From: Hormiphora californensis
Lineage: Eukaryota > Animalia > Ctenophora
Length of the DNA: 64,000 nt
Direction: 5' to 3'
Assembly: GCA_020137815.1 (NCBI GenBank)
Contig: CM035351.1
Span: 3,286,001 to 3,350,000, forward strand
This document shows positions 1-59,200 of the stretch, piece by piece. The first letter of the stretch is position 1. Each line of letters begins with the position of its first letter. A program made the translations under genes and the position numbers. The notes beneath the pieces are model-generated. The model had not been told where the DNA came from, searched no databases, and saw nothing but the letters and a program-made list of their open reading frames with translations.

Positions 1-330
1 ATCAGTCTACCCGGCTTTTCGTACCGAATTCGGACGAATTTAGGCTTCCGTCCGATTTTGGTGCATATTGTCATCCTAGCGGACATCTCTACGAAGTCTG
101 GAGTCTCAACTCCAAAATTTCAATTCGGAACTTAGGGCGATTTTAGGCCATTTTAGCGTTTTTCAATTAGCGATAATTAACGAACCGAACATTGTTCAGA
201 CTTAAACTCTGCGGTATTTGAACCTCTATTGCCACCTCTTAGCATGGGAGAAGTTTCATAGAAATCAGAGGAGGTGACTGTAATTATTGCCTCTACTATA
301 ATAAATCGCCACACATTTAGCTCGCCACAC

Positions 331-2947
331 ATGGAGCAGGTAGACCAGATCATCTTGGTGACACTCCGAGAGTTGGGCCTGACACTGGATGATGACATCA
401 CCACTCTCTCCCACCTGTCCGATGTTCAGGTTTGAGCTGTCAGAGCATTGGCCTGACCTTATTCTCATTTCTATTCTCACGCGAGAACCGCCGTCAGAGC
501 ATTGGCCTGGCAGGGTTTGAGCGGGGTGTGGCGACCATGGAATCGTGGTACATAGTTCTCTTTTTGGAGTTTCGAAACTAAACAGGGAATGAATTCAGGT
601 TGTGGGAAGTGTAGCCCGGTGTCTCAACACAATACGAGGCAGCAGTGGGGAGAAGATCTCTGAGACACTTCCTGGTAATATGGCGATGAGATACCGGCTG
701 GGAATACAACTTGCTAACGCCTGCAAGGAGTTAGGGTATGTTTTCCATATATTTACAGTAATACAGTTCGTATATAATTTACTATTATGTGACATTATGA
801 CACCCTGTATATATAGCTGTGGGTTATAGTTAGGCGTTAGCTGTCAGGCTTCCTGTCTACTGTAAATTTCTAGGGGAAAGTAACACCCGGAATTATTTTT
901 GGAGTTATAACTTCCTTATAAGGCGAATAGCCCTGCGTCACTAACGCCCGCTCCCCTGATATTGCGACAGGTACAAGGCCGATATTGGCTACGAAACGTT
1001 TCTATACGCTAACGAAGTTGAAATCCGGCGACTCCTCATGTTTCCTAGGTGGAGAAACTACCTCGTACAGGAGGTGGAGGAGGTGGGGGAGGTGTGGACC
1101 AGACTAGTAGATCATCTTTGTTGTGTTCCATTGGGCGAGAGTTTAAACGGCAACTCTCCCTTCCCTGGCTCCCCTGCCCCATTACAAGTCCCTAATGGCA
1201 CTGTTTGGGATGGACCAACTACCTTCCACACTGTGTCCGGGTTTACTTCCTTCTCCTCTACCCCCTTGGCTCTCTCGAGAAGGGAAGTCCTGGCGCAACA
1301 GTGCTCTCCAGACCACCTTCTTTGCAGTTTAGTTGCCCTGAACTCCAAACTCAGTCGAGATCTCGATATAACGAACATCAGTTCCAAGACCACTGCTGCT
1401 TCTGTTACAGCTCTTTCGCCGGAGAAGCGAGGAAAGATCAGAGAGTTGGTTAGTAAAGCAGCTTCGGAGGCTGCTGTTTCCACCCTTACTCCCTCATCAC
1501 CAGTGGGTCTGGGTAGTATTAGACTGAGTGCTACGTCACCAATAGCGGCTGATGAACCGTTGAAAAGTGAGGAAAGAGGAGAGGAGAAGGAGGATGAGAA
1601 AACAGAGGAAGAGTTACTAGAGGAGCAGAGAAATGAGGCTGCAGAGTTAGAGGAGGTGTTGGAGGGGTTAGTAGAGAAGGAACGAGAGATGAGGGGCAAG
1701 ATAGAGGGTGCAGGGGAGAAGCTGAAGGGACTAGAGGAGGGGTGTAAGGGCAAGGAAGTGGAACTGGAGGCTCTTGGAGCGGAGTACCAAGTGAAAAAGA
1801 AGACCCTACAGTTAGTCCCTACAGAGGAAAGTCCTGTTAAAGCGATGCGGGGAAAGCTGGATACTGTCCAAAAGGAATCCCTTCATGTTCAGGTAATATA
1901 TATTTGTCACTTCCATTTTCCCAGCTCTGAATACTTAGTACTAGGCACTTCATTCCTAGTACTAGGCACTATGTTTCTCCCCTTCATTCCTAGTACTATA
2001 GGTATTCTCTCTGTCGTTCAACCCTACTACTCTGTCGTTCCTACTAAGTAGTAGGCACTTCTCTCTGCCGTTCCTACTAAGTAGCAGGGTAGTTATAAAA
2101 CCCCTTCCTACTTAGTATGATTTAACAAGCCGTGAATTCTCCGTGTGACACGTTTTGTAATTCATTGTGACAGCTGAGTATGCCATATTATATTATCCAC
2201 TTCTCTCCTTCTATCCTTATCTCTCTCTATCTTTCTATCTCTCCCTCTCTCTCTCTCTCTCCTTCTATCTCCCTCTCTCCCACTATCTCTCTACCTCCCA
2301 TTTCTGCACAGGACATGTGGATAGCCAGGGAGAACCAACTGCGAGCCCAAATCCAGGACCTCACCTCCGAACTAGCGGTCAAGGAATCCCTAACCGCCGA
2401 ACTGGTCACCGAGATCCGGGACATGAGGGCTGAGATAACCTCCCTGGTTTCCGGTATAGACGAGAGAGAGGAGGAGCAGAAGGAGTTGGAGAGACAGGCT
2501 GGCAAACTAACGGGCAAGATCAATAGGAACTCTCACACGAGGAAGATCCTTGATACTGTTGAGCGGATAAAGCGGCAGAAGAAGCAGATAGATACGATAT
2601 TGAGTGACACGAGGGTTGTTCAGAAGGAAATTAACTCACTAAACGGGAAGATAGAACGAGTCTTCATTGAAACAGATGAGATAATATTCCGAGATGCAAA
2701 GAATAATGAACTCTGTAAACAAGCCTATAAACTTCTTGCTAACCTACAATCTGAGTTCAATGCTCTGGTTCGGGCTCTGGATGATATTGGATCTATGAAC
2801 AGAGAGTTGAGAGATCTGGAGGATATGTTGTTAAGAGAGAAGGATAAGAATGTAGCGGCTCAGGTTGTGAAGGTGGAACATGATTTGGCGACGGTGGTGA
2901 GTGAGAATAAGAAGTTAGCTGCAACCATTGATGCGACAAGGAAATAA
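331..2947 (+). CDS. CCDC22: Coiled-coil domain-containing protein 22 (CCC/Commander complex); exons 331-429, 599-735, 971-~1892, ~2312-2947
   Basis: Spliced N-terminus MEQVDQIILVTLRELG..VVGSVARCLNTI..MAMRYRLGIQLANACKELG|YKADIGYETFLY resembles CCDC22 (MEEADRILIHSL..MSARFRLAMSLAQACMDLGY..LGYQNFLY). C-terminal coiled coil HTRKILDTVERIKRQKKQIDTILSDTRVVQKEINSLNGKIERVF..DEIIFRDAK. GT-AG junctions are in phase. Compensating 1-nt frameshifts at about 1041-1190. Confidence 0.9.
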
Positions 2948-3421
2948 TGATCACCTGTTTTCCGATGGTAGTATCATGGGTTTCAGCCTGGAACTTTCAG
3001 GCGATTTTGTGATTGTTGATATGTTGAGTAGGTTTAAGTACGAGTTTAGGGGACGGTTTTAGTTTTTGACCGGAGGTGTGTTTTATAAACTTTTACTTTT
3101 TTTATAGTGTGTTAGTTTTTGAATGATTAATTATTCCATTAAATTACCTTGTTACATCCTAATAAATCATGTGTGTGTGGTTGTGACGTTGACGTTCTAT
3201 TTTTTGTTTTCTGTTGTTACTTGTTGGATTGTTTTCTTCTCCCTTATCCCCCTCAATATACCAGTCCCCCCTCAATACAGCCCCCTTGATCCGCAGATCT
3301 GTACATTGCACAGTCCCCCGATCACCACAATTCGGTCTTTCAATAACACCCCTTCTCTCCATGATATATCTAGCAGTATGAGTCAGGAATAACACCCCTT
3401 CTCCCCATGATATCTAGCAGT

Positions 3422-6400
3422 ATGAGTCAGTTATATCAGGAATGTGCAAGGATCATTACACGTGTAATAGCCGGAACTGGATCAGTTAAATCACTCTGTC
3501 TCAACTCCAAGAACAGAGCCAAGAAGAAACTCTACGCTATCGTGTTTAATGTCCTACAGAGTAGGTTGAAATAAGTTGTCATCTCGTAGCGGCATCACTA
3601 ATTATTGTGATTAGTTGTGCACTAATCATTTATTAGTTATGCAGCTAGGAGAGGGGTTATTAGCGCGATGGCAAAGTCTCTAGTAGAGACTCTCTACTCA
3701 GCGCAGGGGGGAGAGTGGGTGGGTGGGTCAACTTCTACTCTTCCTCATTCCTTCCTTTCGCTTTCTCTCCCTCTTTGCCTTTTACCGTCCCTTCTAGAAG
3801 GCCCTGGAAGATCTTCTGCGGACCTAATTCCCTTTGCAATTATCCCCTCATCATTCCCGCTGATTCTCTAATCCCCACACTCTTTATATCCTAATCCTCA
3901 CACTTTATATCCCTGCAATATAGGATCTAGTATCATGTCAATCCAAGACCGTAACACGGTGTTTTACAACATCTACCCTCTCTCCGACACCACCACCTCT
4001 CTAGACGAACTAAGGCTACAATGCCTCGAGTTCCTCTCCCCTCATCTCGATATAATCTGGAATGCGGAGTGTTTCACCCTCACCCCGGTCTCCCATCCCT
4101 CCCACCCGCACCTCAAGGGCCAGGTGTGGTTTGATAGCTCCCTGGAGGATGAGTGGTATGTGGTGTGGTTGCTACGGAAACTAACGGCCCAATTCCCGGG
4201 GATCGTCTCCAAGGTCTGGGATGACGATGGAGAGTTCATGTTGATCGAGGCATCTGATGCGGTACCCCCCTGGCTTATCCCTGAAATTAGTGACAACAGG
4301 GTGTTCTTATACCAGGGTAAGGTGGCGATAGTACCCCAGCCTACCACCCCAGCCCACATGGGTCTATTTCCCATGACGGGGGTCACACTTGACCAAGCCC
4401 TTCGGTGTATACCCCATATTAACCTTGAGGAAGAATCAGCCCGAATTGACAAGTTGGTGTGTGAACGATTATCTGATTTTCCCGAACGAAGTCTCCACAA
4501 GAGCAGGGTACACCTGCCTGTCACTCTCGTCCATGCACTCTCCCAGAACCCCGGTCTCATCTCCAGTATCATCAGCATGTACCTGTACGCAGATCGGCAG
4601 GAGATCGCCTCAGTTGTAAAGCACAAACGCCTCCAGTGGGTGGACACCTGTGACACTAACATCACTCTGACGAGATGCCAGTATGCACAGTTGTACAGTC
4701 AGAGGATCAGTAGCACCCCGGCATGGCCGAGTAAACCCGCTGGACATGTGGATCACCTGGCCCGACAGCTGGGGTTGAAAGTGACACTGGGTGCCGAGCT
4801 CGCTCTCTCTGTTGCAGACGGGGAGACAGGGACTGATGCGGAGTTTGTGAGGTATCGTAAGAAGTTGGAGGGTATGGGGTACTTTAGAGGTGACATGGAG
4901 GGATCAGCAACATACAAAGAACAGCTGAGGAAGGCAGAGTTGTTCTACAAGTCATCTCAGGAACACGACACTAGTGGTAATGTGTGGATGTCCAATAGCA
5001 GGGCTCTATCCCATCTTGTGGACTCCTCAGCAGCAGTGGATCTAGATCAGTACAGAGGTGCGGATGTTAGTGAGTCTGATCCGGATGGGTGGATGGATGT
5101 CATGCCTGTGGATATCCAGAGATGGTTCCTGAGGGGCCGGGAGCACGATAAAAGTACGAGTACTGGATCCACCACTAAAAACAAAGGTCCTTCTAATCAT
5201 CCTGATAAGGTAGACGAGATATCAACCCGGAACATGGATGTGATAAACAGCCGACTCCAGTCGTTTGTTGAGCAGGTATCCAGTCATGAGGGGGCTGAGG
5301 TACCGGGTGATCTAAATCTGAACCCTGATGATTTCTTTAGTGCTCTCCAGGGACTGAAGGATCAGGTAGATAGAGCACGGGAGAAGGAGGATGAGAGTGG
5401 CAGTGAAGATACATCCTCCATAGAGTCTGATCTGAGAGCTGAGTCGGAGGAGGAGATGAGAGAATACATGAGAGAGCTAGAGGGTCAGCTAGGGAAGACT
5501 ACTCTAACTGAGTCATTCGAAAAGGGGCAGGATGGAGAGCTGGATATTGATTTTAACTTGGTTTCCAATATTCTGAACTCGTTCTCTGCTGACTCAGGGT
5601 TAGATGGTCCAGCGTCTAGTGTGTTGGCTTCTCTTGGTGTCAGGTTGCCTAGAAACGAGGACAATTTTTAGTGAACTGATGTATATTTTAACATGTGTGT
5701 GCTTTTATTTTACCTCTACATATTTTAATTTTTTTAAAGTTGCTGAACAAAATAATGTGTTGTTAATAAATCCAGTGTGTCCAACTCTTTTGGTAATGAA
5801 ATTACCCCTCCACGCAAGCTCAAGCCTCAAGGAGCAGCGTATTAGGGGTGACTTCCTAACCAAACAACTCTTCTAACACGAAGGAACCAGCAGGAAGGGA
5901 GGATGTCTCTAAAACAGATATTGTTTGACGAGGATGCTCTCTCCAAACTACCCGACCTAGTTGACCTTCTCCAGAGGGGCTGCATCCCTGAGGGCGAGAT
6001 AATCCAACTATTCCCCGCTCTCTCTACTCTCCTGAACGGCACTCTCCCACAACGTAAAATGGGTCTCTCTCTCCTCAAGTGTTGTATCCTCTACCTACAT
6101 TCCCGGAATAAGATCTCCGAACATGTTGATGTCATGGTAAAGTGGTGGAGAGCCGCGGTGGGATGTCTCAAATCCCGGTACTCGGCTGATTGCACATTCC
6201 GGTTAGCTGCCATCAACTGCACCCTCTTCACCCAGATAGCAGGTAGTTATGTGGACTTGTTGATCGAGGGTCGAGGTAGTGTCCCTATCATGGTGACAGC
6301 GTGTACCAGCCACCCATGTACTGAAACATTCACCATTCTCCCTCTCCTTGTCAAGCACTTCCCATCCCATATTGGCAAACATTTTGACCAAATCCGGGGT

Positions 6401-9400
6401 TTCTGTCTCAGTCAGGTGGGAGACTGGCCGGTGGAGGCAGGTGAGCTATTAGGCAGGTTGCCCTGTACCGGTCCAGCGGGTAAGAACAGTGCCACGTATG
6501 TTGTTAGTTGGAGAAAGGAGTTTGGGGCGTGTCTGGGTGGTCTGAGAGGGGTGTTAGGGAGGGTGACGGGTGCCCAGCAGGTGTTACAACAACACCAGGG
6601 TGATGCTAGGAAGGTGTTACCGGATATCACCCTCATTGGTAACCATGGTGATATAACAACAGCTAACAATCACGTGACATTCCTCTGTTCTGCTCTCCGA
6701 TCCCTGCTGACATCTTGTTCAGTAGAAGCACCTGTATCTGTACCTCTCTCAACTGTTAAGAGTCTTATTGAGGAGGTGGCAAGGAGTTATCAAGATTCTC
6801 TGTCCTTTATCTCCACCTCAGACAACTTTACTAAACGGCTCATCCTATCCCATACTGTGCTAGAGGTACTACAATTCCTGGGATCCCTCTTCAAAGTCCT
6901 CGGTACCACCACCCTCCTTCTCCAGCCGGCAACCGAACAACTCCTGATTCCTCTCCTACGATCACCAGCTACCTCTCTCCCTGCAGTCACCCTAATCCAC
7001 ACGATGGTGAGAGTGACTGGTAGTAGTGTGGGCGTCCCTCTAGTCATGTTAACCTCCCTTCTCTCTCTCAACCAGCTGACCCTAACAGCCGGGTCTGGGG
7101 GCCAGGTTACCAAGAAACAAAGGACGGAGCAGTTTAATACCCTAACATTTGAGAATTCTACCCTGGGATCACACGATGAGAGACTAATGGAGAAAGTACT
7201 GGAGGTTGTTAACGAGATTTTAACAAGCACTGGACCTTTTCTAGCACAAATGAAAAGTGAGGACTTGCGGGGGAAGTGTCAGGGGATAATTTCCAACTCG
7301 GCCTGTTTTTCACCATCATTAGTCCGTCTGGCTCACTCAACCTGCCTTCTTCTCTCAAGCCCAGAGGTATCTCTAGCCCATCAGACGAACTACTGGAGCC
7401 CAGATCTCACAGGGTTCTTTGCAAGCCAGATGAGGACAAGTGAAGCTCATATTCACCCCCAAAGGTGTTATATTACCGGACCACAACATTCCACTGAACA
7501 AACATCACTATTTGAGGGCAGCAACTCGACACAAAATCATCGGGGGAACCTTCGAGAAGAATTAGAGCACATGGCGGCCACCGCTGCTAAAGAATGTGCT
7601 ATCCCTTCCGTTCGGACTACACAAGAAGAGGAAGAGGAGGAAGAGATGGAGGTGGCAGTAGAAACAACAACACAGGAGGAGGAGAATGTGGGGGAGAATG
7701 GGTATACTTTAGATCTGCCACCAAAACCGGTCTTTGAGTTGCCACCATCATTGCAACAGCGGGCCACAAACCTTGTACAGAGTGGTAAAGAGAATTTGGT
7801 GATGAACAACAATACGAAACCTGAAGCACCGGTTATAGATTTGAAACAGGGAAGTGTGGAGTTACTGGACCTAATGTCTTCTTTCGTTGATGAACCTGCG
7901 AGTGATGGAGAGTGTTAGTTTTTAATTGTTAATTTATTTCTCTTTTAACTTTTATCAAATGGCTGCATTTGTTCTCCCCTTGTAACCCCTGTCTCTGACC
8001 CATGCTAACCCAAAATTGCTCCAACTGCCATTTCCCAGCGCAACCTACTCTTTCGCCCTTTCAAATCCCCCACTTTTATAGTTACCCCTCTAACCCCCTG
8101 TTACTAATACCACTACCCCCTCCCCCAGTTACTAATTCCACTACCCCCTCCCCCAGTTACTAATTCCACCTCTTCCTCCCTATCTGTAGAATGGCTGCAG
8201 CAGCAACACCAGGCTCTATGATGGAGAAATCATTCCAGCTCCAACTCCAAATGAAGCAAAACACGGAAGAAATGTCATCCTTTCTCAAGGACATGACCGA
8301 CTGGACCAAGGAGGTTAAACAAAAAGATAAGGATCTTATCACATCTAGTGACAGTAAACCATCCGAGGTCCTCCCTCCAATCCGGTGCCAGCCTAAACCT
8401 CGCAAGAAGAAGAAGAAGTCGGGAGCTGCTGTTTTAGCCACAGATCAGGACAAGCAAATCGGGCTCCTCAAAGATCAGGGGTAACGACTACCGAGCCTGG
8501 GACAAGTTTGATGTTGATGCTGCTATTAAGGAGATAGATGGTGGAAAGCAGCAGCAGGGGCAGAGTGATGAGGGGGATGTAGCAGGGGATCAGGATGGGG
8601 AGGAGAGTGATGCTAGTACTGATAATGAAATGTTGGACAAGCAGGAGGAGGAGAGGAAAACAAATGCAGGCAGTTTACCTCAAGGAGAAGGGAAATGACT
8701 TTCTTTAAACAAGGAAGTGGGAGGATGCTGTTGAGTGTTATACAAAGGGCCTCCAGTGTGATGCACTAAATGCTGTCCTATTCGCTAACCGTGCCATGGC
8801 CCTTATCAAGCTACAGAAGTATGCTGCTGCTATTGCTGATTGTGATTGTTCCATTGAGCTGGATGATGGGTATACCAAGGCGTATCTGAGGCGTGCTAAC
8901 TGCCCATCTGAAACTAGAGCACAAGGAGGAGGCCCTGGCTGATTTCAGGAAGGTGCTGGAGTTTGAACCTGAAAATAAGCTGGCACTGGGTACTGTTAGG
9001 AAACTAGAGGTAGAGCTGGCCCCACCAGTCCAGTACAAACCGAGAAAGGAGGGTGATATCACACACATGAGGACGGACCCTGCCTCCATCTGATAAACCC
9101 ATGGTTAGGATCCAGATCCACGATATCCGAAATGATGAGTATGATATCCGACCTGCCAGCAGAACCCCGGCCAAGTCAGTCCCTGAAACTCCAACAAATG
9201 TGAAATTTGAGACACTCCCAACTCGTATTCCGGCCAACTATCTCCAGTTTCAGACGGACTTCAGGAAGTTGAGAACCAACCCTGAGGCTCTCTTTAAATA
9301 CATCAAACAAATCGACCCTGATATCTACCCTAAATTGTTCCAGGATTCTCTAGAGGCTGACCAACTATTTATCATCCTAGACATTCTGAACAAGTTCTAT

Positions 9401-11582
9401 GTGCCAGCCAAACTGCCTGTTTATAATGAGTTACACTACCTGACTAAAGTTAAGAGGTTCGACATGGCGGTTATGTTTAAGACGGAGGCCCAGCAGCTAA
9501 CTATCAGTCAGTTGGTTCACTACGCTGCCGAGAACGCGAGTTGTAAGGTGGGAATCTTGAAACTTGTCAAGGCTTATGATATCATGGACTTATCTAAATA
9601 TGAACTGCCTGATATGACTGATGAAGTTGAGACAACTAGTTGAGAGAGGGTGTTATCGGATCTTTTTTACATCTCAGTCACATTCTTACAACTGTGTAAA
9701 TATTTATTGTCAGAAGTGGACACACCAGGCTGTGTGTTGGAGCGTGTGTCAGTCGGAGTATGGAAATGTGGAACTGTGTTTCCGAACTTATTGTGTACAT
9801 AAACCCCTCATACAATGTATTTGTTACCAGTAACTCGGTTTTGTTGTTATTTGAGAGAAAACGTGTCAACTGTCGGCGACCCCCCTCTCATATTTTCTCT
9901 CTCTCTCTCAACTCGCCCACTCATCTTCTCCGATAGTGTGTGTGCGGGTTTCTAGAAGAAACGGCGTGTCGGGGGGGCTGGTGGGGTTTGGAACGCGCGG
10001 TAACTTTCTTATGTTCTGAGTAACTCGTGTGCGCGCTCCTCTCTCATCCTCATCTCCCCCACTGACCTCAGGCTCAACATGACCCCGGCCCACGCCCCTT
10101 CTATTCTGGCAGGCCTCCACATCTCCCAGCCCCCCCCCCTTTTTGACACTTCCTCAGTCATCTCTAATCTCTCTCTGTTTCCTCAGATTATCAAGCCCTG
10201 GAAAAGATTGCTGATGAAGCCGGACTTGAAAAGGTAGACCTCTCATCCTGACCTATCATCACCATTCACCGGCCACGCGAGAAACCTGTTTGTGTTTCTT
10301 ACTCAACTAGTTTCTGTAGAACACGTCCATGAAGTCCGACATATTCAGCATTTAACGTGTATAATATTTCATTGCCTTGTTCAAACTTCGTCCCTCCCTC
10401 GGAGAGAGAGAGAGGGTTACAACATAACAAGTAATTTATTGTTCAGTGCTCTAACAAATAATCTCATTTCAGACCCCGTTTGTGTGTGTTCATCTCTACG
10501 AGCTGCTCTTCAGAGGATCTCTCAGCACTGGGGGACCTCTCAAATCCAAACTAATGTCCCTGAAACCTAGACTACTGGAACTGAAAAAGAAACACGCCTC
10601 AACCCCCACAAAACAGGCCCGTCTCCCTCTGTATGTTAGGATTAACTCACTTAAAGTGCCTGATCCTGTTTCAGTAGTCAGACAACTGCAAGAAGACTTC
10701 CCAGGTGGTGCATTTGCTGGCGACCCTCATGTCAACTTTCTGTTTCGGTTTCCTGCGACTACTAATTTCAGTGAACACCCCCTGTACAAGAACGGGACAC
10801 TGATTATCCAGGATAAAGCGAGCTGTCTGCCTGCTGTAGCTCTCTCCCCACCCCCTGGTTCTGTGGTACTGGACGCGTGTTCTGCACCGGGGAATAAGAC
10901 ACTCCACCTAGCGGCGCTAATGAAGGGGTCAGGACGGGTGTTGGCTATTGAGCGGGATAGGAAGCGGTTCAATCGGTTGAAAGGTAGTGTTCACAGACAC
11001 GGAGCAGATAAAGTCATCACTCCAATCTGTTCTGATTTCCTGAAGATAGACCCAACTCAACCTCCCTATAACACGGTAACCCATATCCTCCTCGACCCGT
11101 CCTGTAGTGGCAGTGGGATGGTGACGGAGAACCTGGTGACTCAATTTAAACCGGTGAATCAGAACCGTCTTGATGAGTTAGCTACCCTTCAACGCACCCT
11201 CCTCTCTCACGCCCTAACTTTCCCAGCCCTTCACCGGATCGTCTACTCCACCTGCTCTCTCTATGAGAAGGAGAACGAGGCGGTGGTCCGGTCTACTGTT
11301 GAGGGGAATCCAGATTGGGAGGTAGTACCAGTGATACCTGATTGGACACGCCGCGGGCATGGTGTCGACATGTCAGGGTGCGTACGGTGTCTACCGGAGG
11401 ACAACACTAACGGCTTCTTTCTGGCCTGTTTGCAGAGGAAGGAGAAGGAGCCAGTTGTTGTTGATAAGAGTGGAGCGGGGAAGTTTAAGATACAGAGTGT
11501 GTTTGTAGTGGGACGGCTAGAGAGGAGATTCAAGTTGCCCCGGGGACCTTACAAGTACCCTTATAAATTTATTGCCATTTGA
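3422..11582 (+). CDS. NSUN5: 28S rRNA cytosine-C5 methyltransferase NSUN5; exons 3422-3560, 10187-10233, 10473-11582
   Basis: Exon 1 MSQLYQECARIITRVIAGTGSVKSLCLNSKNRAKKKLYAIVFNVLQ resembles the NSUN5 N-terminus (MGLY..GSIKGLVYSS..KQLYALV). Phase-1 donor A|gtaggt joins cctcag|AT (N-YQALEKIADEAGLEK). A phase-0 junction then joins cag|TPFVCVHLYELL. The last exon has YVRINSLK, IQDKASCLPA, DACSAPGNKT, LLDPSCSGSG, YSTCS and GFFLA motifs. Confidence 0.92.
3935..5671 (+). CDS. ECD: Ecdysoneless / SGT1-family protein, intronless, nested in NSUN5 intron 1
   Basis: 578-aa ORF with the SGT1/ECD motifs FDSSLEDEWYVVWLL, DDDGEFMLIEASDAVPPW, NRVFLYQG, TRCQYAQL and GYFRGDMEGS. C-terminus DIDFNLVSNILNSFS..GLDGPASSVLASLGV. 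Confidence 0.95.
   Translation: MSIQDRNTVFYNIYPLSDTTTSLDELRLQCLEFLSPHLDIIWNAECFTLTPVSHPSHPHLKGQVWFDSSLEDEWYVVWLLRKLTAQFPGIVSKVWDDDGEFMLIEASDAVPPWLIPEISDNRVFLYQGKVAIVPQPTTPAHMGLFPMTGVTLDQALRCIPHINLEEESARIDKLVCERLSDFPERSLHKSRVHLPVTLVHALSQNPGLISSIISMYLYADRQEIASVVKHKRLQWVDTCDTNITLTRCQYAQLYSQRISSTPAWPSKPAGHVDHLARQLGLKVTLGAELALSVADGETGTDAEFVRYRKKLEGMGYFRGDMEGSATYKEQLRKAELFYKSSQEHDTSGNVWMSNSRALSHLVDSSAAVDLDQYRGADVSESDPDGWMDVMPVDIQRWFLRGREHDKSTSTGSTTKNKGPSNHPDKVDEISTRNMDVINSRLQSFVEQVSSHEGAEVPGDLNLNPDDFFSALQGLKDQVDRAREKEDESGSEDTSSIESDLRAESEEEMREYMRELEGQLGKTTLTESFEKGQDGELDIDFNLVSNILNSFSADSGLDGPASSVLASLGVRLPRNEDNF
5903..7918 (+). CDS. PELP1: PELP1 / Rix1-like rixosome subunit, intronless, nested in NSUN5 intron 1
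   Basis: 671-aa Leu-rich helical ORF. EAPVSVPL resembles PELP1 GAPVSVPV and EAHIHPQ resembles the Rix1 HPR motif. It has a Glu-rich tail, and the terminal LMSSFVDEPASD resembles MLADFIDCPPDD. Confidence 0.8.
   Translation: MSLKQILFDEDALSKLPDLVDLLQRGCIPEGEIIQLFPALSTLLNGTLPQRKMGLSLLKCCILYLHSRNKISEHVDVMVKWWRAAVGCLKSRYSADCTFRLAAINCTLFTQIAGSYVDLLIEGRGSVPIMVTACTSHPCTETFTILPLLVKHFPSHIGKHFDQIRGFCLSQVGDWPVEAGELLGRLPCTGPAGKNSATYVVSWRKEFGACLGGLRGVLGRVTGAQQVLQQHQGDARKVLPDITLIGNHGDITTANNHVTFLCSALRSLLTSCSVEAPVSVPLSTVKSLIEEVARSYQDSLSFISTSDNFTKRLILSHTVLEVLQFLGSLFKVLGTTTLLLQPATEQLLIPLLRSPATSLPAVTLIHTMVRVTGSSVGVPLVMLTSLLSLNQLTLTAGSGGQVTKKQRTEQFNTLTFENSTLGSHDERLMEKVLEVVNEILTSTGPFLAQMKSEDLRGKCQGIISNSACFSPSLVRLAHSTCLLLSSPEVSLAHQTNYWSPDLTGFFASQMRTSEAHIHPQRCYITGPQHSTEQTSLFEGSNSTQNHRGNLREELEHMAATAAKECAIPSVRTTQEEEEEEEMEVAVETTTQEEENVGENGYTLDLPPKPVFELPPSLQQRATNLVQSGKENLVMNNNTKPEAPVIDLKQGSVELLDLMSSFVDEPASDGEC
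8191..9643 (+). CDS. RPAP3: RNA polymerase II-associated protein 3 (R2TP co-chaperone), intronless, nested in NSUN5 intron 1; frameshifted in this assembly
   Basis: N-terminus LQLQMKQNTEEMSSFLKDMTDW..LPPIR, then DYRAWDKFDVD, a TPR block (KEKGNDFFK..CYTKGL..LFANRAMALIKLQKY..DCD..YTKAYLRRA) and the RPAP3_C domain (PANYLQFQTDFRKL..YPKLFQDSLE..KRFDMAVMF). About 7 single-base indels between 8450 and 9095 split the ORF. Confidence 0.88.
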
Positions 11583-12223
11583 TAAATCAACGCCAAAGTA
11601 TGGGGGTATTTTTATTTAGAAGTGACTAGGAGGGTTATATTAATTAATAATGTGTGCCAGTAAATTATTGAAAGTTTTGGGAGTTGAATGTCTAACTTTT
11701 TTATAGTCTTGAGAGTGAGCTAGAGTTTCTACCGAATCAGCTCCATTGGTATTTCTAGTCTCGTATATCGGGTTTTATCTCACTTATCTAATAATTCTTC
11801 TTTTGCAGCCGGGTTCCCTGGAAACCGTTTCCACACGCTTCACATCACGTGTATTTTATTTGTCTCCTTCTGTACGTGGGGCGTAGTTCGAGCAAGACAA
11901 ACTTGTTTTTAGATAAGAAGTTCTCTCATTCGCAGCACTTCATTCTTTAGTTTGAGTTTTCTCTGTAACTTAATTAACTTATTCAACCATTGAGAGCATT
12001 ATCAGCATATTTGAATATTTTATACTTCATTGTCTGTGCAATAAAGGACTGGGTTTTTATCTAATAAACAGGGAGACCTTGGTGACCTAGTTTATTTGTT
12101 TGGTCACGCGGTAAACCCTACCCTGACTTTTGAATTTGGGGATGTTTAGCTTTATTTGGGCTTTCTGGTTTTAACCCCTACCGCCTAGTATCCCACCCCC
12201 TAGTCCCACCTCCCCCTAGTTAC

Positions 12224-15200
12224 ATGGGGTACTGTACCCCACCCACTGTACCCCATGTTATGATAGATGGCCCCCTCCCCCAGTCCCCACCCTACTACTA
12301 CTACATATCTGACCACGTCTACCTATTCCCAGCCCATGTTATGATAGATGGCCCCCACTCCTAGACCCCCCCCCCACCTCCTAAACCTCTCACCACGTCT
12401 ACCTATTCCCAGCCCATGTTATGATAGACTAGAGAGCCCAGGCAAAAGAACAAAAAACTCTCACACCCTATTGACTCCTCTCAATCCCGATCCCTGGCTC
12501 ATGCCTACTTTGCTCCCTACGGCGCCGCTTCGCGGCACCTCCGGTCGCGAGATCATACTCCACCCCCCTTCCCCCTGTTGACTCCCCTCAGTCCTCACCG
12601 CTCTTATCCCTATTGACTCCCCTCGGCCCCTATTGAATCATATCGTCCCCTATTCACTCCATCTCACCCTCTATTCACTCCCTTAACGCCCCTCACCCCT
12701 CTCTTAATCTGTGATCTGAAGCAGTTCAGAACCCCAAATTTTCCCTCATTTTTCACCATTTCCCCCATTACTTAGTCATTTCTCAGCCAATTTCGAAAAT
12801 CTTGGGCTCATTAGAAAGATAATCTCAAGCTCTTTCCAAAGAGCTATTATCCCCCAAATTTATAAAACCTTTACACACGCACGTGCACTCCCCAAACCCC
12901 ACCAACTACCCCTAACAACACGTCAATTTTCCACGTGCAAGCCCTAAAAAACCCCCAAAAAACCAATTGTCTTGCAAGCATCTCTGCTTTATAATATAGA
13001 CTAGAGAGCCCAGGCAAAAGAACAAAAAACTCTCACACCCTATTGACTCCTCTCAATCCCGATCCCTGGCTCATGCCTACTTTGCTCCCTACGGCGCCGC
13101 TTCGCGGCACCTCTGGTCGTGAGATCATAATCCACGCCCCCTTCCCCCTGTTGACTCCCCTCAGTCCTCACCCCTCTTATCCCTATTGACTCGCCTCGGC
13201 CCCTATTGAATCATATCGTCCCCTATTAACTCCATCTCACCCTCTATTCACTCCCCTATAATGCCATAATGAATACTCCCCTCACCCCTCTATCAATCTG
13301 TGATCTGAAGCAGTTCAGAACCCCACATTTTCCCTCATTTTTCACCATTTCCCTCATAACTCGGTCGTTTCTCAGCCAATTTCGAAAATCTTGTGCTCAT
13401 TAGAAAGATAATCTCAAGCTCTTTCCAAAGAGCTATTATCCCCCAAATTTATAAAACCTTTACATTCGCACGTGCACGCCCCAAACCCCACCAACCACCC
13501 CTAACAACACGTCAATTTTCCACGTGCAAGCCCTAAAACCCCCTCCCCCCAAAACCAATTGTCTTGCACTGTTCTCTGCTTTATAATATAGACTAGAGAG
13601 CCCAGGCAAAAGAACAAAAAACTCTCACACCCTATTGACTCATCTCAATCCCGATCCCTGGCTCATGCCTACTTTGCTCCCTACGGCGCCGCTTCGCGGC
13701 ACCTCCGGTCGCGAGATCATACTCCACACCCCTTCCCCCTGTTGACTCCCCTCAGTCCTCACCCCTCTTATCCCTATTGACTCCCCTCGGCCCCTATTGA
13801 ATCATATCGTCCCCTAATCACACCATCTCACCCTCTATTCACTCCCCTAACGCCATAATGAATACTCCCCTCACCCCTCTCTCAATCTGTGATCTGAAGC
13901 AGTTCAGAACCCCAAATTTCCCCTCTTTTTTCACCATTTTCGCCATAATTCAGTCATTTGTCAGCCAATTTCGAAAATCTTGGGCTCATTAGAAAGATAA
14001 TCTCAAGCTCTTTCCAAAGAGCTATTATCCCCCAAATTTATAAAACCTTTACACACGCACGTGCACGCTCCAAACCCCCCACCAGCCATCCCTAACAACA
14101 CGTCAATTTTCCACGTGCAAGCCCTAAAACCCCCTCCCCCAAATTTTGTCTTGCACTGTTCTCTGCTTTATAATATAGATGGCCCCCACTCTTAAACCCC
14201 TAAACTCCTAAACCCCCACCCTCTAACCCTCTCACTACATCTCTCACTACCTAGCCCATGTTATGATAGATGGCCCCCACTCCAGTGAAGTGGAGGACAA
14301 AGAAGAGGAAGAAAGTATGAGGGGGTCCAAGGATACCGTACCATTACTTATCAATAGCGCTTCAGAGGTACGTTACTAACATTGAATGGCCCCCATTGAA
14401 TTACTTAGGGCGGATTCTAGGAATGGTGTTTCTGAGTTCCATGAATATCATTTTTATATTCTTCCACTCTACACCTTCAACCATCATGATCAAAGAGGCC
14501 ATTTCGGATATTTCCCTGAGTCCCAGGCCGTGTCTCGCCGCAACACAAAATGTCTTTTTTTTGGTCGCGTGACTACAATCGCGTGAATTAGTTAATCCTT
14601 TGTCGTTCCGTCTCTTTTCCTGTAATGACCGTGGCGAGGGGGGGGGGGGCTAATGACTGCAGCCCCTGCAGCTGCCCCTATATAATGATCATCACGTGGT
14701 TCTCTTATCTTGTGGGGGTCAATAGAAAGGAGAGGCTCCGGGAGACTGGAGATTAATTTCCCAAATCCTACCTGAGGTTCAGGTCACACTATCTTGTTTC
14801 CTCTTATCATATTAGGTCGTTTCATAAACATGATGATGATGAATAAAGATACCGAATTTTGTTCTTCTATTCTTTCCAGTCCGGTCATTGCGTGAGCAGA
14901 GCAAAGCCATGCTGGAATCATGGCAAAAGTTAGTTGATGCATAATATCCTAACTTTCGCCATACTGTTTTTTAGTCCTAGTCTCTCAATTGAATTGCCTT
15001 ACTCTTTAGAACCCTCTTTAGAACCTGTTCTAGAACGTTCAATTCAATTTTTGCTATAACAACAATTGAATTTGCTCTCAATGAACTTTGTTTCAAAAAA
15101 TACTATACAGAGGGCCAGCCGACCGTGAGCTATGACTAAAAACGTCAATTTTTAATTTTTATTGGTGTGTACTGACCCTAACTCACTTCCAGTATTTGCC

Positions 15201-33777: not shown

Positions 33778-36700
33778 ATGTCAAAGTAAGTGTACATACA
33801 ACAAGCGTTGCTGTATGTTAGTCACTTGTTAATAACCCTCTCTTTCCAGGACTAATTCAACTGTTCGCACGCCGAGCTCGGTGGCCAAAACTCCCAAACG
33901 ACGGAAATGCATGGACCCGGTTGAGGTTTCCTGCCGAATCAGACCGCTCTTTGGACAAGGCTCGAAATGTGTGGAGAAGGTGGATGATAGTTTACTGAAA
34001 ATCACCGCTCCACCAACTTCTCAGCTGTACAAGAACAATCCCGTGGCACCATTTCTATACACCTTCAGCGATGTCTACGACGAGGAGGTCTCCCAGAAGG
34101 CAGTTTTTGATAAACTAGCCCTGCCCCTGGTGGAGGATGTTGTGAAGGGAAAGAACGGACTATTATTTGCTTATGGTGTTACAAACTCAGGGAAAACTCA
34201 CACAATGATTGGACAGTCTAATAATCCCGGCATTTTGCCAAGATGTTTGGACGTTGTCTTCAACACTATCGGGGAGAACCAAGCTCGACCATTTGTAAGT
34301 GGTTACATCTCAGTGTACATCTTATCCCCCTCAATTATATTCCTTCTAAGCACTTCCCCTCCCAGATATGTCTTCTAACCACATCCCCTCCTCCCAGATA
34401 TTTCGACCTGACGAGCACGAGGCGAATGGTATGAAGATCCAGGCAGAATACCAGGCAGCGGTTATGAAGCGGACACAGGAGCGAGAGAGGAAGCAAGTGG
34501 AGAGGATCAAGAGGCAAAATGGAAGACCCCAAACACCAGACATGCCTGACGAGATTAGGATACCAGACAGCACGAAACTCCACTGTGTATGTTATTAGTT
34601 GTATGATGAAGCAGTAATGGAAACTATTGTATTTTAACAAAACCAAGGTTTTGAAAACCCTGTGGGAGAGCTGAGACAGTACGAACAGTTCTAAATTCTA
34701 ATAATCTAATAATCTAACACTAAACTATTACAGGTAAATGAGGATAGTGCGTATGCTGTGTTTATCAGTTATGTGGAAGTGTATAACAACTGTATATTCG
34801 ATCTGCTTGATGATGATGTTGTGGATGATTACGGGCATGCAATCCTTCCCGAAACAAAGAAACTGGGAGAGGACAACAAACGGAGGGTATGTGATGCTAG
34901 ATTGCTGAATATTTGTATTTTACCGTCCATCCCTAACCTTCCTATACACTGCTACCTTCACTGCACTATCCTCCAAAGTACAGTATTAATCAACCCCCTC
35001 CCTACCTCTCAATAGCCTCTAATCAGCCTCTAATCAATTATTAAACAACTAACCCCCTTCTCTTCTCATCAGGTAATGTACGTGAAGGACGTGAAAGAGG
35101 TAGAGGTAAAGAGTACAGAGGAGGCATGTGCCCAGGTTTGGAAGGGACAGGAGAAAAGGAGAAAAGCAGCGACCATCCTAAATGATCGATCATCACGATC
35201 TCACAGTGTATTCAACATTCGACTAGTCCAGGTATACATTGTCTACAGTCTCCCGGGTTGTTCAGTGATGTCTGACAATATATCCACATATTGTGGAATG
35301 TGGATATCCTTCAGCATTGTGAGGGATATCACAATTTGTGAATATACCTCTACTCACATTCCACAATTGCAAAATGTTTACACACACATCTCCCACACAG
35401 GCCCCGTACGACGAGGAAGGGAAACAGATTATATTGAACAAGGAAAAGATTGCCATCTCACAGCTCTCTCTAGTAGACTTGGCTGGTTCGGAGCGGGCTT
35501 CTAAAACTAATGTAAGTGTATGTCGCCACCCCGTCTATACACCTCTCCTCCCCTCTCCCCTCCCCTCTCCATCTCTAGACACGGAAACGCAGACTACCAA
35601 TGTTTACCTATGTCTACCTAGCAGTGAATGAATATATAATGCAGGGTCTGCATTACTAACCGATTCTCTCTCTCCCTTCTCTGCATTCCTACCACCGTGG
35701 GAAGATTCCACAAATTATAGGAATCGACCGAGTAACACCTTTGACACTTCCGTATTTAGGCTACAGGTGGGACGCTAAAGGAGGCCGGTAATATTAATAA
35801 CAGCCTGATGACACTTCACACTTGTCTGGAGATTCTCCGCTCAAACCAAATGGGAAAGGGAACCAAGGTAAAATATTCCATCATACTGTCACAATGTCCT
35901 ACTAAAGAGTAGCTAAACAGTACAAAACAGCATCTATATTTTACAATTTTTTCGTCTCCAGTTGGTACCCTATCGAGAGAGCAAGTTGACACATTTGTTC
36001 AAAACCTACTTCGAGGGAACTGGGAAGGTGAAAATGATTGTTTGTGTAAACCCACGCTCAGAGGACTTCGATGAGACTGTGGTAAGTAAAACAGTGTCAT
36101 CTAAAAACTAGCAGGTCTCCTTTAAACTTCCACCTCATATTTCGGAACGAATAATTTTAAACCCCCCCCCCCTAATTCCTAATGGTAACCCCCCCCCCCC
36201 ATTGCAGCACGTGATGAAGTTCGCTGAGTTGACTCAGGATGTCCAAGTGACACGAGGACAGGAGGTACAATTCGATGACCTCGCCCCAGGACGGAGAAAG
36301 AACAACATTCTATACCAGCGGGTTTCAGCCAGCGGTCTTCTAAACAATGTCAACAACAACTTTGGATTTAATCTCCCTGCAGTTCCCCCTGCCTTTGCAA
36401 TGCCTCCCTTCCCCTCTTGGGCAGTAAGTACTTTTTGTAATGCCTCCCTTCCCCTCATGGGCAGTAAGTACTTTTTGCAATGCCTCCCTTCCCCTCATGG
36501 GCAGTAAGTACTTTTTGTAATGCCCCCCTTCCCCTCTTGGGCAGTAAGTACTTTTTGCAATGCCTCCCTTCCCCTCTTGGGCAGTAAGTACTTTTTGCAA
36601 TGCCTCCCTTCCCCTCTTGGGCAGTAAGTACTTTTTGCAATGCCTCCCTTCCCCTCTTGGGCAGTAAGTACTTTTTGCAATGCCTCCCTTCCCCTCTTGG

Positions 36701-56241: not shown

Positions 56242-59200
56242 ATGGAGCGGCCCGCACTATCGAGTATAATGAACAACTCAGATGATGAGGAAGATACGAC
56301 GGGGGAGCAGACTAAAACAACAATCTTCATTAAGATTGCGGAGGGCAAGAACTTCCCTGTAACTGATACTCTGAGTAAGAGTAGTGATCCATACTGCGTT
56401 CTCAAGGTATGCAGTATATGTATCCAAGGTGTTACACCAGGTATACCTTGTTGAGTAACAAGGTATATCAAGATCAATATCTAGTTCTGTATGAACTATG
56501 AACTGTCAGGCATAGAGATTAGAGAAGAACAGTCAGTTATCATCGCACTGGAAGTGTCAGTATCTTATCTCTACTCACTATTCCAGGTTGACGGACAGAC
56601 TGTGTTGCGGACAATGACTCACTACCGGACCCTGTCCCCATTTTGGGGGGAGGAGTACACCCTGCACGTACAGAGGAACTTCTTCGCACTTTCCGTTTAT
56701 GTCTTCGACGAAGATCTCAGGTTTGAACCATGGATTCATAAAAGCTCGAGTTTTAGTTTCAACTCTAGTTTACACCATACACCATGTCAATTTGGACACT
56801 TCCTTATTTATTATTGAAGGGCTGTGTGGCTCACACCGTCTGTCAGAGTAGATCAATCATAATTCAGAAAACATGGTTATGATCCGGTTCCTGCAGGTAC
56901 GATGATGTAATAGGGAAGGTAACTTTGACAAAGAAGGAGCTGGTAAGAGATTACTCTGCCGGAGATGAGAGATGGTTTCCGTTAGAGAAGGTAATTTGAA
57001 TTATATTCAGTCGTGACCCAGATTTAAACTCGATCATTTGGGGTTTTCCGATTCCCTTATATGACTTCTTTTAGGTAACGAAAGACTCAGAGGTCAGCGG
57101 GGAGGTAAGATTGGAGTTCAACTTGAGTGAGACTAAGCTGGATATCAAGATAGCCGAGGCTCGTGATCTAGCTGCAAAGGACAAGACGGGGAGTTCTGAT
57201 CCATATGGGATCCTAACTCTGGGTTCGAATTCCTTTCAAACGGAAGTCCGTAAGCAGACACGGTTCCCAAAGTGGAATGCCGTGACGACGCTACCAGTGC
57301 CTGCCAATTCGGCTGACCAAGTGGTCACTCTCACCCTCTGGGATAGAGACATGGTCGGTAAAGACGAGTTCATGGGAGTCGTGTCATTTTCTCTCAAGAA
57401 ACTGGAGAAGAGGGTAAGAATAACTTCAGTTCGTCATTGATCGTCTGAAACTGAGTGTGTGGTATCTAGGATAATCTGTCAGGCCAATGCTCTGACCGCG
57501 GTTCTCTCCTTATTTGAAGGAAATGAGAATAGGGTCAGGCTCTGACAGATGATAATACTGCTGACTGATTATGATACCCCCTGTATAGTTCAAAGTACAT
57601 GACCTCCCACACCCAGGACGTCCCCCAACCCCATCTACCTACCCCTGTACAGGTGCAGTATAACCAGTGGTTTTGGATCTACCCCAGGGATGTTATTGGC
57701 CATCAAGCAGCAGGGAGTATTCGCCTCAAGATCCGTTATGTGACTGCTTCTATCCTACCATCACCCGTCTATGAGCCACTTATAAACCTCCTTATCGAAG
57801 AGGTATTATACTAGCCAGTTATGTATTTTAGTCAAGCACCTGTGTATAGTAGAGAGAGTGACTAAAGCCCCCTGACCTCCTAAAAATCACCCCTCAACGC
57901 GAGCGCACGGAGCGTAATAGGGGTGACTTCGTAACCAACTAAGTCCCTTTCTTGTGACCCAAAGATCCCAATTGTCATATAACCCCCCCCCCCCCCCCGA
58001 TCAGGTGGATGGATTCACGGCTGGTAAACTTTCAACTGGAATAACCCCTCTGGCCCTGTTAGAAGAGGCCATGGTGGATAGAATGGAAATGAGTTACATG
58101 TTGGTCAGAGTGTTCCTGGGCAAAGGGAAAATAGAGGGCCTTCTCACCATGCTGTGCACCCTCGAGGCAAAGAAATCTTCCGGAGAAACGGTCTTTAGAG
58201 GTAAGAAATCTTCCGGGGAAACGGTCTTTAGAGGTAAGAAATCTTCCGGAGAAACAGTGTTTAGAGGTAAGAAATCTTCCGGAGAAACAGTCTTTAGAGG
58301 TAAGAGGAACTCTTTGACAAAGCTCCTGAGATGTCGTGCATTCTTAAAAAACGGAGCCGTGCAGGGTGGCCGAAATACCGTTTCAGAAACTTGCGAAACT
58401 GAATATCGGATATCATCCCATATACAGCCCTCTCACTATGACACCACACCCCCTACAGATAACTCGCTAGCGGCAAAATGCCTGGAGCAGTATCTGAAGA
58501 TCACGGGTACTCTCTATCTCCAGAGTGTTCTGGGGAAAGTCATCAAGAAGATATACCGAGAAAACCGGTACTGTGAGATGGACCGAGCTAAAATATCCAA
58601 AACGTAAGCGAGATGCAATGATAATCACATATAATGTAGGCACGTGATAGTGCAGCAGGTGAATCATTATGAAGAATACTAGGACTGGTTAATTGCATAT
58701 TCAATGAAGAATTTTGTTTTCTCCTTCCGGCTGGTCAAGATGAAAAGATGCGGGTTTATTGGAGTTGGATGCAACTATAATAACTAAATCTTGTCCAGCC
58801 GGAAGAAGAAAACAACACGATCTGCAAGAATGATTATGAAACCTACTTATACTTGATACTTGGTTCGGTCTCCTCAATCATTCGAGTGGCCGGCTCCAAG
58901 TATCCTCGCTCGTAGCGACGTGAGCTGTCTCCATTCATTTCTGTTCTCTGCAGTGTTAGTAATAGCACGGAGAGACTGGGATTGACCCGTAGCGTCTCGA
59001 TAATCGTTCAGAACACAGGAAGTCCAGGTTTTACGCGGTTTTCCTCTGGAACGTCTCCCATGACTAGGCACCCAGTGATAGAGTTTGTTGGGCACCCTAC
59101 CCTCAGGCATTCTAATCAGGTGTCCAAACCAGCGGAGTCTCCCATTGCCAATGAACTTCGAGATTGGTTCTATCCCCGCCCTCTCCAGTACCTCCCTGTT

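Follow-up and report, generated by a model that had tools for sequence, protein, structure and literature searches.

Three same-strand guest genes, ECD, PELP1 and RPAP3, lie within the first intron of NSUN5 in the ctenophore Hormiphora californensis

The window analysed here is a stretch of 64,000 nucleotides of the H. californensis genome. From the homology of its exons and the splice sites read in the sequence, intron 1 of NSUN5 is the host of three guest genes on the same strand, namely ECD, a PELP1/RIX1 homologue and RPAP3. The coding sequence of the guests (3935-9643, + strand) is located wholly between NSUN5 exons 1 and 2, and the guests occupy about 80% of the intron. We consider it probable that this same-strand nest is real and old, with single-copy, intronless and expressed housekeeping genes as its guests, and that four separate mRNAs are made from it.

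NSUN5 exon 1 (3422-3560, + strand), recognised by tblastn, is 139 nt long, corresponding to 46 codons plus 1 nt, and ends at the donor A/gtaggt. Intron 1 (3561-10186, +) spans 6626 nt and ends at the acceptor cctcag/AT before position 10187. The first-pass annotation had proposed this exon and both splice sites, and all of them could be read in the sequence. Exon 2 (10187-10233, +; 47 nt) encodes (N)YQALEKIADEAGLEK, and its counterpart in L005, the complete NSUN5 mRNA (430 aa) of another ctenophore, is residues 47-62 (QYETLSKIAQECHLQS). After intron 2 (10234-10472, +), exon 3 (10473-11582, +) was identified by Pfam and tblastn and contains both defining domains, the ferredoxin-like and the RsmB/F methyltransferase domain (PF21148 and PF01189). 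The best named matches of NSUN5 are 28S rRNA (cytosine-C5)-methyltransferases.

The homology evidence for the host gene was taken exon by exon. Queries with the N-terminus of nine full-length NSUN5 proteins matched 3422-3559 in every case (9/9, best E-value 2.9e-9), and a ctenophore NSUN5 mRNA matched exon 1 with 67% identity in tblastn (E-value 5e-13). An alternative first exon close to the acceptor had been named in the first-pass annotation as something that would speak against the nesting; the same nine N-terminal queries found nothing in 9650-10186. Exon 1 is the sole coding sequence for an NSUN5 N-terminus in the genome (110.69 Mb in 45 contigs searched) and the body of NSUN5 is likewise single-copy genome-wide. 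The possibility that exon 1 or NSUN5 occurs twice was considered and rejected, as the genome search gave only two distant NSUN paralogues with 31-33% identity. The L005 mRNA is colinear with exons 1, 2 and 3, and on this basis the joining of exon 1 to exon 2 (3560^10187) is predicted. Its 5′ end carries an SL-like sequence, ...TTTTAATTGAG, two bases ahead of the ATG. With exon 1 assigned by the nine N-termini and L005, the earlier claim of tight same-strand packing inside NSUN5 intron 1 stands. The upstream neighbour of NSUN5 is CCDC22 (332-2947, +), a multi-exon gene with an ATG read at 332, intron-like gaps and approximate exon limits, on which Pfam CCDC22_CC covers 1038-2051 and 2180-2947. 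It is encoded on the same strand and its stop codon is 475 nt from NSUN5 exon 1.

The gene identities given in the first-pass annotation all held, those of ECD, RPAP3 and NSUN5 by Pfam and that of PELP1 by other means. ECD (ecdysoneless/SGT1; 3935-5671, +) is an intact intronless ORF of 578 aa, which matches Pfam PF07093 (SGT1) at profile positions 1-556 of 587 with an E-value of 1e-99 and is 95% identical to the Pleurobrachia bachei model. The second guest (5903-7918, +) is an intact intronless ORF of 671 aa. It had no match in Pfam even at an E-value of 10; judged by fold, profile and Atlas score rather than by Pfam, it is a PELP1/RIX1 homologue. The nine best PDB matches of its predicted model (mean pLDDT 59) were all PELP1 or Rix1, with an E-value of 1.2e-7 and a target-normalised TM of 0.61, human PELP1 ranked first in the profile search (E-value 0.008), and the Atlas score to RIX1/PELP1 was 0.97. 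ECD, PELP1 and RPAP3 are each single-copy in the genome. The spacers measure 231 nt between ECD and PELP1 and 272 nt between PELP1 and RPAP3, as previously noted together with the ECD and PELP1 ORFs.

The third guest, RPAP3 (8191-9643, +), comprises an N-terminal region, one TPR block and RPAP3_C (Pfam E-value 1e-22). The first-pass annotation described three complete ORFs, which is correct for ECD and PELP1; RPAP3 is frame-broken in the reference. Compared with an intact ctenophore orthologue of 502 aa (P0123) it is colinear in five pieces along the frame path 1>2>3>1>2, with four net frameshifts and one local disruption, reading NDFL*TRKWE. The breaks lie near 8455, 8658, 8699/8712, 8898 and 9073. 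RPAP3 orthologues in other ctenophores are intact and 500-502 aa long. The indels at 8699, 8712, 8898 and 9073 (4/4 covered positions) are missing from the RNA contigs of two studies, whose cover does not extend to the breaks at ~8455 and ~8658. This RNA originates from seawater metatranscriptomes and not from the sequenced animal, so that assembly error, allele and RNA-level change look alike in the comparison. The reference was assembled from PacBio CLR reads with wtdbg2, its gaps closed with LR_Gapcloser and the result polished with pilon. Because RNA contigs from two studies are free of them, the indels are probably assembly errors. We strongly infer that the breaks are a fault of the reference, or of one allele, and not gene decay; RPAP3 as a dying pseudogene was rejected on the same RNA contigs, without indels at every covered site. 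The reference thus probably carries insertion-type indel errors in at least RPAP3, and the reads should be consulted on other apparent '+1 frameshifts' of this assembly before recoding is called.

The RNA contigs cover PELP1 at 6311-7910 and NSUN5 exon 3 at 10725-10891 and 11347-11500, and RPAP3 also lies under them; expression of PELP1, RPAP3 and NSUN5 is shown or strongly inferred. An ECD contig reaches 5748, with only the ECD 3′ end within the stretch mapped. The contigs leave gaps at 7910-8676 and 9833-10725, and the guest 5′ ends and the host junction lie outside their cover. RPAP3 makes its own poly(A) end within the host intron (9798-9833, +). A CATAAA is located at 9798, and 23 untemplated A follow position 9833 on the loose end of a contig from run X1. 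This poly(A) site lies 353 nt 5′ of the host acceptor at 10187. Downstream of the ECD stop codon, a script search found AATAAA at 5765-5770 (+), from which it is ~120 nt to the AG (5892-5893) ahead of the PELP1 ATG.

An AG dinucleotide stands just 5′ of each ATG. It is found 1-11 nt before the guest ATGs, with two candidates for ECD (3922-3923 and 3929-3930), and at 3419-3420, one base 5′ of the exon 1 ATG (3422). Spliced-leader trans-splicing is reported for at least 56% of the Iso-Seq reads in H. californensis (PMC8527503). In the 200 nt upstream of exon 1, ECD, RPAP3 and exon 2, C and T together make up 0.64-0.72 of the bases, against a background of 0.51; PELP1, with only 231 nt upstream, has no C-rich tract. 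The spacers are single-copy and are not transposons. Side searches in the intron gave several candidates that were not retained. Depletion of donor-like hexamers as an explanation for the intronless guests was not supported, with 6 found (the host donor at 3561 and 5 inside guests) and 7.7 +/- 2.6 expected. A snoRNA in the RPAP3 3′ region was rejected: the SCARNA7 match at 9613-9802 reaches 30.7 bits where the gathering score is 65, contains no D box and is taken as chance. The 11 nt at 8041-8051 are perfectly complementary to the exon 1 donor, which is at chance level for that length.

The synteny check proposed earlier gave a positive result, as ECD and NSUN5 share a contig in 12 other ctenophore assemblies, joined by RPAP3 in 3/12. 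The contigs with all three genes have sizes of 34114, 39461 and 167066, and those with ECD and NSUN5 have sizes of 600937, 481281, 351705, 59887, 77169, 11561, 11426, 109764 and 155074; the linkage was read from equal contig size and speaks to co-location, not to gene order, strand or the place of exon 1. The guests are likewise single ORFs in the genomic contigs of distant ctenophores. The linkage is very probably conserved in other ctenophores, and the neighbourhood old.

In the reading that we prefer, the locus would give rise to four separate mRNAs. The 5′ ends of the guest mRNAs would be formed by spliced-leader trans-splicing at the AG 1-11 nt before the ATG, and each guest would have its own cleavage and polyadenylation at the 3′ end. 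NSUN5 mRNA would be made only when a polymerase passage brings the donor of exon 1 beyond the acceptors and 3′-end signals of all three guests to 10187, and because the donor must pass these signals, competition with guest processing would set the NSUN5 output. Transcription that starts 5′ of exon 1 has to run across the guests, so part of the RNA initiated by the host probably ends up as guest mRNA through operon-like processing. The C-rich tracts before ECD and RPAP3 may instead be promoters of their own. A plausible account, though not the one we favour, gives the guests, or the ECD-PELP1 pair, their own intronic promoters, treats read-through as minor and attributes the packing to a compact genome. 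Parallel nested genes are common in this species, for which Schultz et al. 2021 (PMC8527503) report 2357 nested intronic genes, many running in the direction of their host, and the C-rich 200-nt tracts and the separate poly(A) site of RPAP3 fit such independence. However, these promoters are hypothetical, PELP1 has little room for one and lacks the tract, and host transcription crosses all guest signals, so operon-like processing is hard to avoid.

We regard as unlikely a true operon inside the intron, in which the guests would lack promoters and a single primary transcript would start upstream of exon 1 or come from CCDC22. Trans-splicing of the spliced leader coupled to polyadenylation would then release the ECD, PELP1 and RPAP3 mRNAs, and NSUN5 would come from the uncut fraction, or from a tethered or released exon 1 joined to 10187. 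The common strand and the short, single-copy, non-transposon spacers are consistent with this, as are the AG immediately before every ATG, the ~120 nt from the ECD AATAAA to the PELP1 acceptor in a spacer free of a C-rich tract, the linkage kept among ctenophore lineages, the guest functions in housekeeping RNP and ribosome biogenesis, and the SL-like 5′ end of the relative's NSUN5 mRNA. Yet no RNA contig bridges two genes, given contigs with the two gaps described above, and the C-rich tracts ahead of ECD and RPAP3 could be promoters. In nematodes a donor cis-splices to the first acceptor downstream. The exon 1 donor, 360 nt 5′ of the ECD acceptor, should therefore capture that acceptor in cis, and because of this rule a simple shared transcript is disfavoured. 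As of 2021 ctenophore operons were also unreported (PMC7986045). Less likely still, in our judgement, is a phylum-wide operon in a cis-spliced intron, where one passage of the polymerase would produce SL-capped ECD, PELP1 and RPAP3 mRNAs, and exon 1, staying at the polymerase or set free with an intact donor, would still join 10187; if true, no operon would have been shown in ctenophores before it, and cis- and trans-splicing would be combined in a new way. Last in probability comes retroposition, in which the guests would have arrived one after another or together in a polycistronic cDNA, with RPAP3 as a decaying processed pseudogene. The three guests are intronless whereas CCDC22 and NSUN5 have introns, and RPAP3 is frameshifted in the reference, which would fit. 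However, the genome contains no parental copies, each guest being single-copy, no A-tract, flanking direct repeats or SL remnant was found at the guests, and RNA contigs restore the RPAP3 frame at the covered sites. Because the orthologues are single ORFs in distant ctenophores, any retroposition predates the divergence of these lineages; recent retroposition is largely refuted.

Among the closest known layouts is that of the spliced-leader operons of nematodes and tunicates (the C. elegans SL2 type, Ciona and Oikopleura), which, like the NSUN5 locus, group housekeeping genes on the same strand. In these spliced-leader users the spacers are roughly 100-270 nt and the acceptor lies just before the ATG, and Ciona operons have intron-poor members, as does the NSUN5 locus. 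Unlike in classical operons, the NSUN5 cluster is placed in a cis-spliced intron, with a donor upstream of all trans-splice acceptors. Moreover, the nematode and tunicate operons are known to be resolved by the spliced leader, whereas the NSUN5 locus is known from gene layout, with only AG dinucleotides visible. Processed retrogenes are likewise intronless coding copies; the guests differ from them in having no parental gene, poly(A) remnant, target-site duplication or SL remnant, and in being single-copy and conserved.

Among nested genes, the same-strand nests known from Drosophila and from human (Yu et al. 2005; Henikoff et al. 1986, both cited by PMC8527503) also require the host to be transcribed and spliced across complete guests. 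Such nests usually contain only one guest, which has a promoter to itself, and involve no trans-splicing, whereas the NSUN5 intron holds three. The nests of Schultz et al. 2021 are alike in that a single host intron contains the guests whole and in parallel orientation, and the figures there include hosts with several guests. The first-pass annotation had taken most nested genes to be single and antisense, which does not fit H. californensis, where, according to that paper, many of the 2357 are parallel to the host. The available text of the paper does not describe the NSUN5 locus, and in comparison with the nests in it, the three intronless, functionally related guests, the conserved linkage and the poly(A) site of one guest are new. 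Comb jellies combine spliced leaders on most mRNAs with nested genes in the thousands, of which many share the strand of their host, and operons are so far unreported in the phylum. How a host gene gets read through complete guest genes is a general question, which the NSUN5 locus addresses as a compact test case with one donor, four acceptors and three 3′-end signals in 6.8 kb.

The coding sequence of NSUN5 begins at ATG 3422 with a 139-nt exon 1 (3422-3560; donor A|gtaggt), continues at the intron 1 acceptor at 10187 (cctcag|AT) with a 47-nt exon 2 (10187-10233) and, after an intron of 239 nt, ends with exon 3 (10473-11582). Three guest genes in intron 1 had been proposed by the first-pass annotation. 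The nest is real, with ORFs at 3935-5671 and 5903-7918 and an RPAP3-like gene at 8191-9643 between exons 1 and 2, and when read in the sequence, the coordinates proposed for exon 1, donor, acceptor, ORFs and spacers (231 nt and 272 nt) proved right.

The N-termini of all nine full-length NSUN5 proteins used as queries, from sponge to vertebrates, matched 3422-3559 (best Sycon, 51 % identity, E 2.9e-9), and none of them had an N-terminal match closer to exon 2. A scan of JGI metagenome contigs recovered L005, a 1378-nt ctenophore contig with a complete NSUN5 ORF of 430 aa. Exon 1 is matched by its first 46 residues with 67 % identity (E 5e-13), exon 2 (YQALEKIADEAGLEK) has its counterpart in residues 47-62 (QYETLSKIAQECHLQS), and residues 63-428 align with 10473-11573. 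As the exons are matched in the predicted order, L005 represents a spliced NSUN5 mRNA of another ctenophore. Exon 1 is more conserved against L005 than exon 3 (52 %), and is therefore a coding part of NSUN5. In the 110.69-Mb, 45-contig assembly searched for copy number (window on contig 2, 3,286,001-3,350,000), exon 1 is present once at both the DNA and protein level, and the NSUN5 body is likewise single-copy. Based on the exon 1 homology, the exon order in L005 and the single copy of exon 1, the junction 3560^10187 is strongly inferred for H. californensis from sequence comparison. At 3342-3438 the exon 1 acceptor and start codon are duplicated in tandem, with a unit of about 46 nt (ATATCTAGCAGTATGAGTCAG is present twice); translation from the upstream start codon would stop after four codons (MSQE*).

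Regarding the guests, each is present in one copy in the genome. The first ORF encodes a 578-aa ECD/SGT1 protein (PF07093, E 1e-99). The second, of 671 aa, remained without a Pfam match up to a threshold of E 10. Atlas grouped it with RIX1/PELP1 (0.97), the three best PDB hits of a three-sequence profile were all human PELP1 (E 0.008), and the nine best PDB matches of its AlphaFold model (mean pLDDT 59) were PELP1 or Rix1 chains (E 1.2e-7, target-normalised TM 0.61). From these grouping, profile and predicted-fold matches, we accept it as a fast-evolving PELP1/RIX1 homologue. The third guest contains RPAP3_C (E 1e-22) and is colinear with P0123, an intact 502-aa ctenophore RPAP3.

RPAP3 had been annotated as a complete ORF, which overlooked that it is broken in the reference. 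Relative to P0123 the reading frame changes near 8455, 8658, 8898 and 9073 (1>2>3>1>2), and the local sequence NDFL*TRKWE stands against NEFFKQGKWE in the orthologue. Within 620 nt at 8455-9075 the sequence shows five insertions and one deletion, each of one base. We aligned RNA contigs from seawater metatranscriptome runs, including X1 and X3, to 5600-11599, which covered four of these six indels (8699, 8712, 8898 and 9073; the other two lie near 8455 and 8658). Contigs of X1 lack one letter at 8699 and carry an extra G after 8712, while contigs of both runs, which come from two studies and differ in SNPs, lack one letter at 8898 and one at 9073. Introducing these changes yields NDFFKQGKWED and places the last three RPAP3 pieces in one frame. 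The genome was assembled from PacBio CLR reads with wtdbg2, gaps were closed with raw long reads, and the pilon-polished result is a composite of two haplotypes; residual insertion-biased errors would fit this history. The breaks are thus very likely assembly errors, and 8455-9075 is probably a badly polished patch. A null allele in the sequenced animal is improbable and a change at the RNA level very unlikely.

The RNA contigs matched all covered genes with 90-100 % identity, reaching 5748 at the ECD 3′ end and covering 6311-7910 of PELP1, 8676-9833 of RPAP3, and 10725-10891 and 11347-11500 of NSUN5. One X1 contig carries 23 A's not encoded in the genome after 9833, 30 nt downstream of CATAAA at 9798. 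The RPAP3 mRNA thus receives its poly(A) tail after cleavage within the host intron, 353 nt upstream of the acceptor at 10187. For ECD, an AATAAA lies at 5765, and a motif scan found no canonical poly(A) signal for PELP1. A 30-nt motif (80 % alike) occurs at 3106-3135 after the CCDC22 stop (AGTGTGTTAGTTTTTGAATGATTAATTATT) and at 7909-7938 over the PELP1 stop (AGAGTGTTAGTTTTTAATTGTTAATTTATT); it may be a 3′-end signal or chance. A SCARNA7 match at 9613-9802, over the RPAP3 end and 3′UTR, was rejected as chance (30.7 bits versus a gathering score of 65; C-box-like UGAUGA, no D box).

The synteny comparison proposed in the first-pass annotation supported an old linkage. We looked for homologues recorded on contigs of exactly equal nt size, which shows a shared contig and not order, strand or the place of exon 1. 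ECD, RPAP3 and NSUN5 homologues share contigs of 34114, 39461 and 167066 nt, and ECD and NSUN5 homologues share contigs of 600937, 481281, 351705, 59887, 77169, 11561, 11426, 109764 and 155074 nt. ECD/NSUN5 linkage is thus kept on 12 contigs, with RPAP3 on three of them, in four sequence lineages, one including Bolinopsis microptera; two are below 11.6 kb. Twelve exact coincidences cannot be chance, and the linkage is therefore old. The NSUN5 homologues there are 50-58 % identical to the window, and since the NSUN5 gene calls begin at the exon 3 acceptor (FQ|TPF...) or slightly upstream of it, these contigs are unspliced DNA. On genomic contigs of those assemblies ECD and RPAP3 are each encoded by a single ORF, of 561-610 aa and 500-502 aa respectively, and both thus lack introns in the other sampled lineages. 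P0122, a PELP1 homologue of 667 aa, is encoded by one ORF on a contig of 3.6 kb, which is either genomic or a transcript. If the guests arose by retroposition, this must be older than the split of the sampled ctenophores, and it left no trace: the genome has no parental copies of ECD, PELP1 or RPAP3, no A-tracts, flanking repeats or leader remnant were found at the guests, and the intercistronic spacers are single-copy.

An AG lies 1-11 nt upstream of every ATG (exon 1 cag|tATG, ECD tag|tatcATG, PELP1 cag|gaagggaggATG, RPAP3 tag|aATG). In the preceding 200 nt, C+T is 0.64 for exon 1, 0.72 for ECD, 0.71 for RPAP3 and 0.70 for host exon 2 against a background of 0.51, and not enriched for PELP1 and the ordinary exon 3 acceptor (both 0.54). 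These C+T-rich tracts could be promoters, or else polypyrimidine regions of an outron-like kind. At 8094-8177 a C-rich 28-nt unit (CCCCCWGTTACTAATWCCACTACCCCCT) is repeated three times in tandem directly before the RPAP3 acceptor, and a long, strongly C-rich stretch downstream of NSUN5 (12150-14500, GC skew to -0.55) resembles the tracts before guest 5′ ends. L005, which comes from a JGI metatranscriptome, starts with ...TTACTATATTTTAATTGAG (1-21), followed by cgATG; its ...TTTTAATTGAG, two bases before ATG, resembles the leader end AATTTGAG in the genome paper (PMC8527503), and nucleotides 1-21 are probably the spliced leader of that species.

Expression of NSUN5 requires polymerase passage from exon 1 to 10187, and host transcripts must consequently contain all guest signals. 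In a trans-splicing organism, part of them probably gives rise to guest mRNAs. Once a transcript is cut at one of the guest poly(A) sites, exon 1 is parted from exon 2, so that in the simplest view each transcript yields NSUN5 or guests. From the donor of exon 1 to the ECD acceptors it is only 360 nt, and by the nematode rule their capture in cis would be expected, which speaks against a simple shared transcript. That the guests are supplied mainly from the host transcript, as in an operon, is rather unlikely. Independent guest promoters are a reasonable possibility, somewhat short of an even chance, and mixed or other supply takes the remaining probability. Spliced in cis to AG 3922-3923, donor 3560 would read A|GA TCT AGT ATC ATG in the ECD frame with no stop, yielding an NSUN5(1-46)-ECD fusion; AG 3929-3930 is out of frame.

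Same-strand nesting is of a kind already known in this genome (110 Mb, 44 scaffolds), for which the genome paper counts 1654 host genes whose introns contain 2357 nested genes, 'many ... parallel with the host gene', and reports that at least 56 % of the Iso-Seq reads carry a spliced leader (PMC8527503). No ctenophore operons were reported as of a 2021 survey (PMC7986045), and our literature searches found no publications on the NSUN5/ECD/PELP1/RPAP3 locus. Elsewhere the window contains a kinesin motor exon (33881-34378), a RasGAP exon (57954-58607) and, on the minus strand, a 510-aa retroelement ORF with an RVT_1 reverse-transcriptase domain (58874-60406, E 9e-26).
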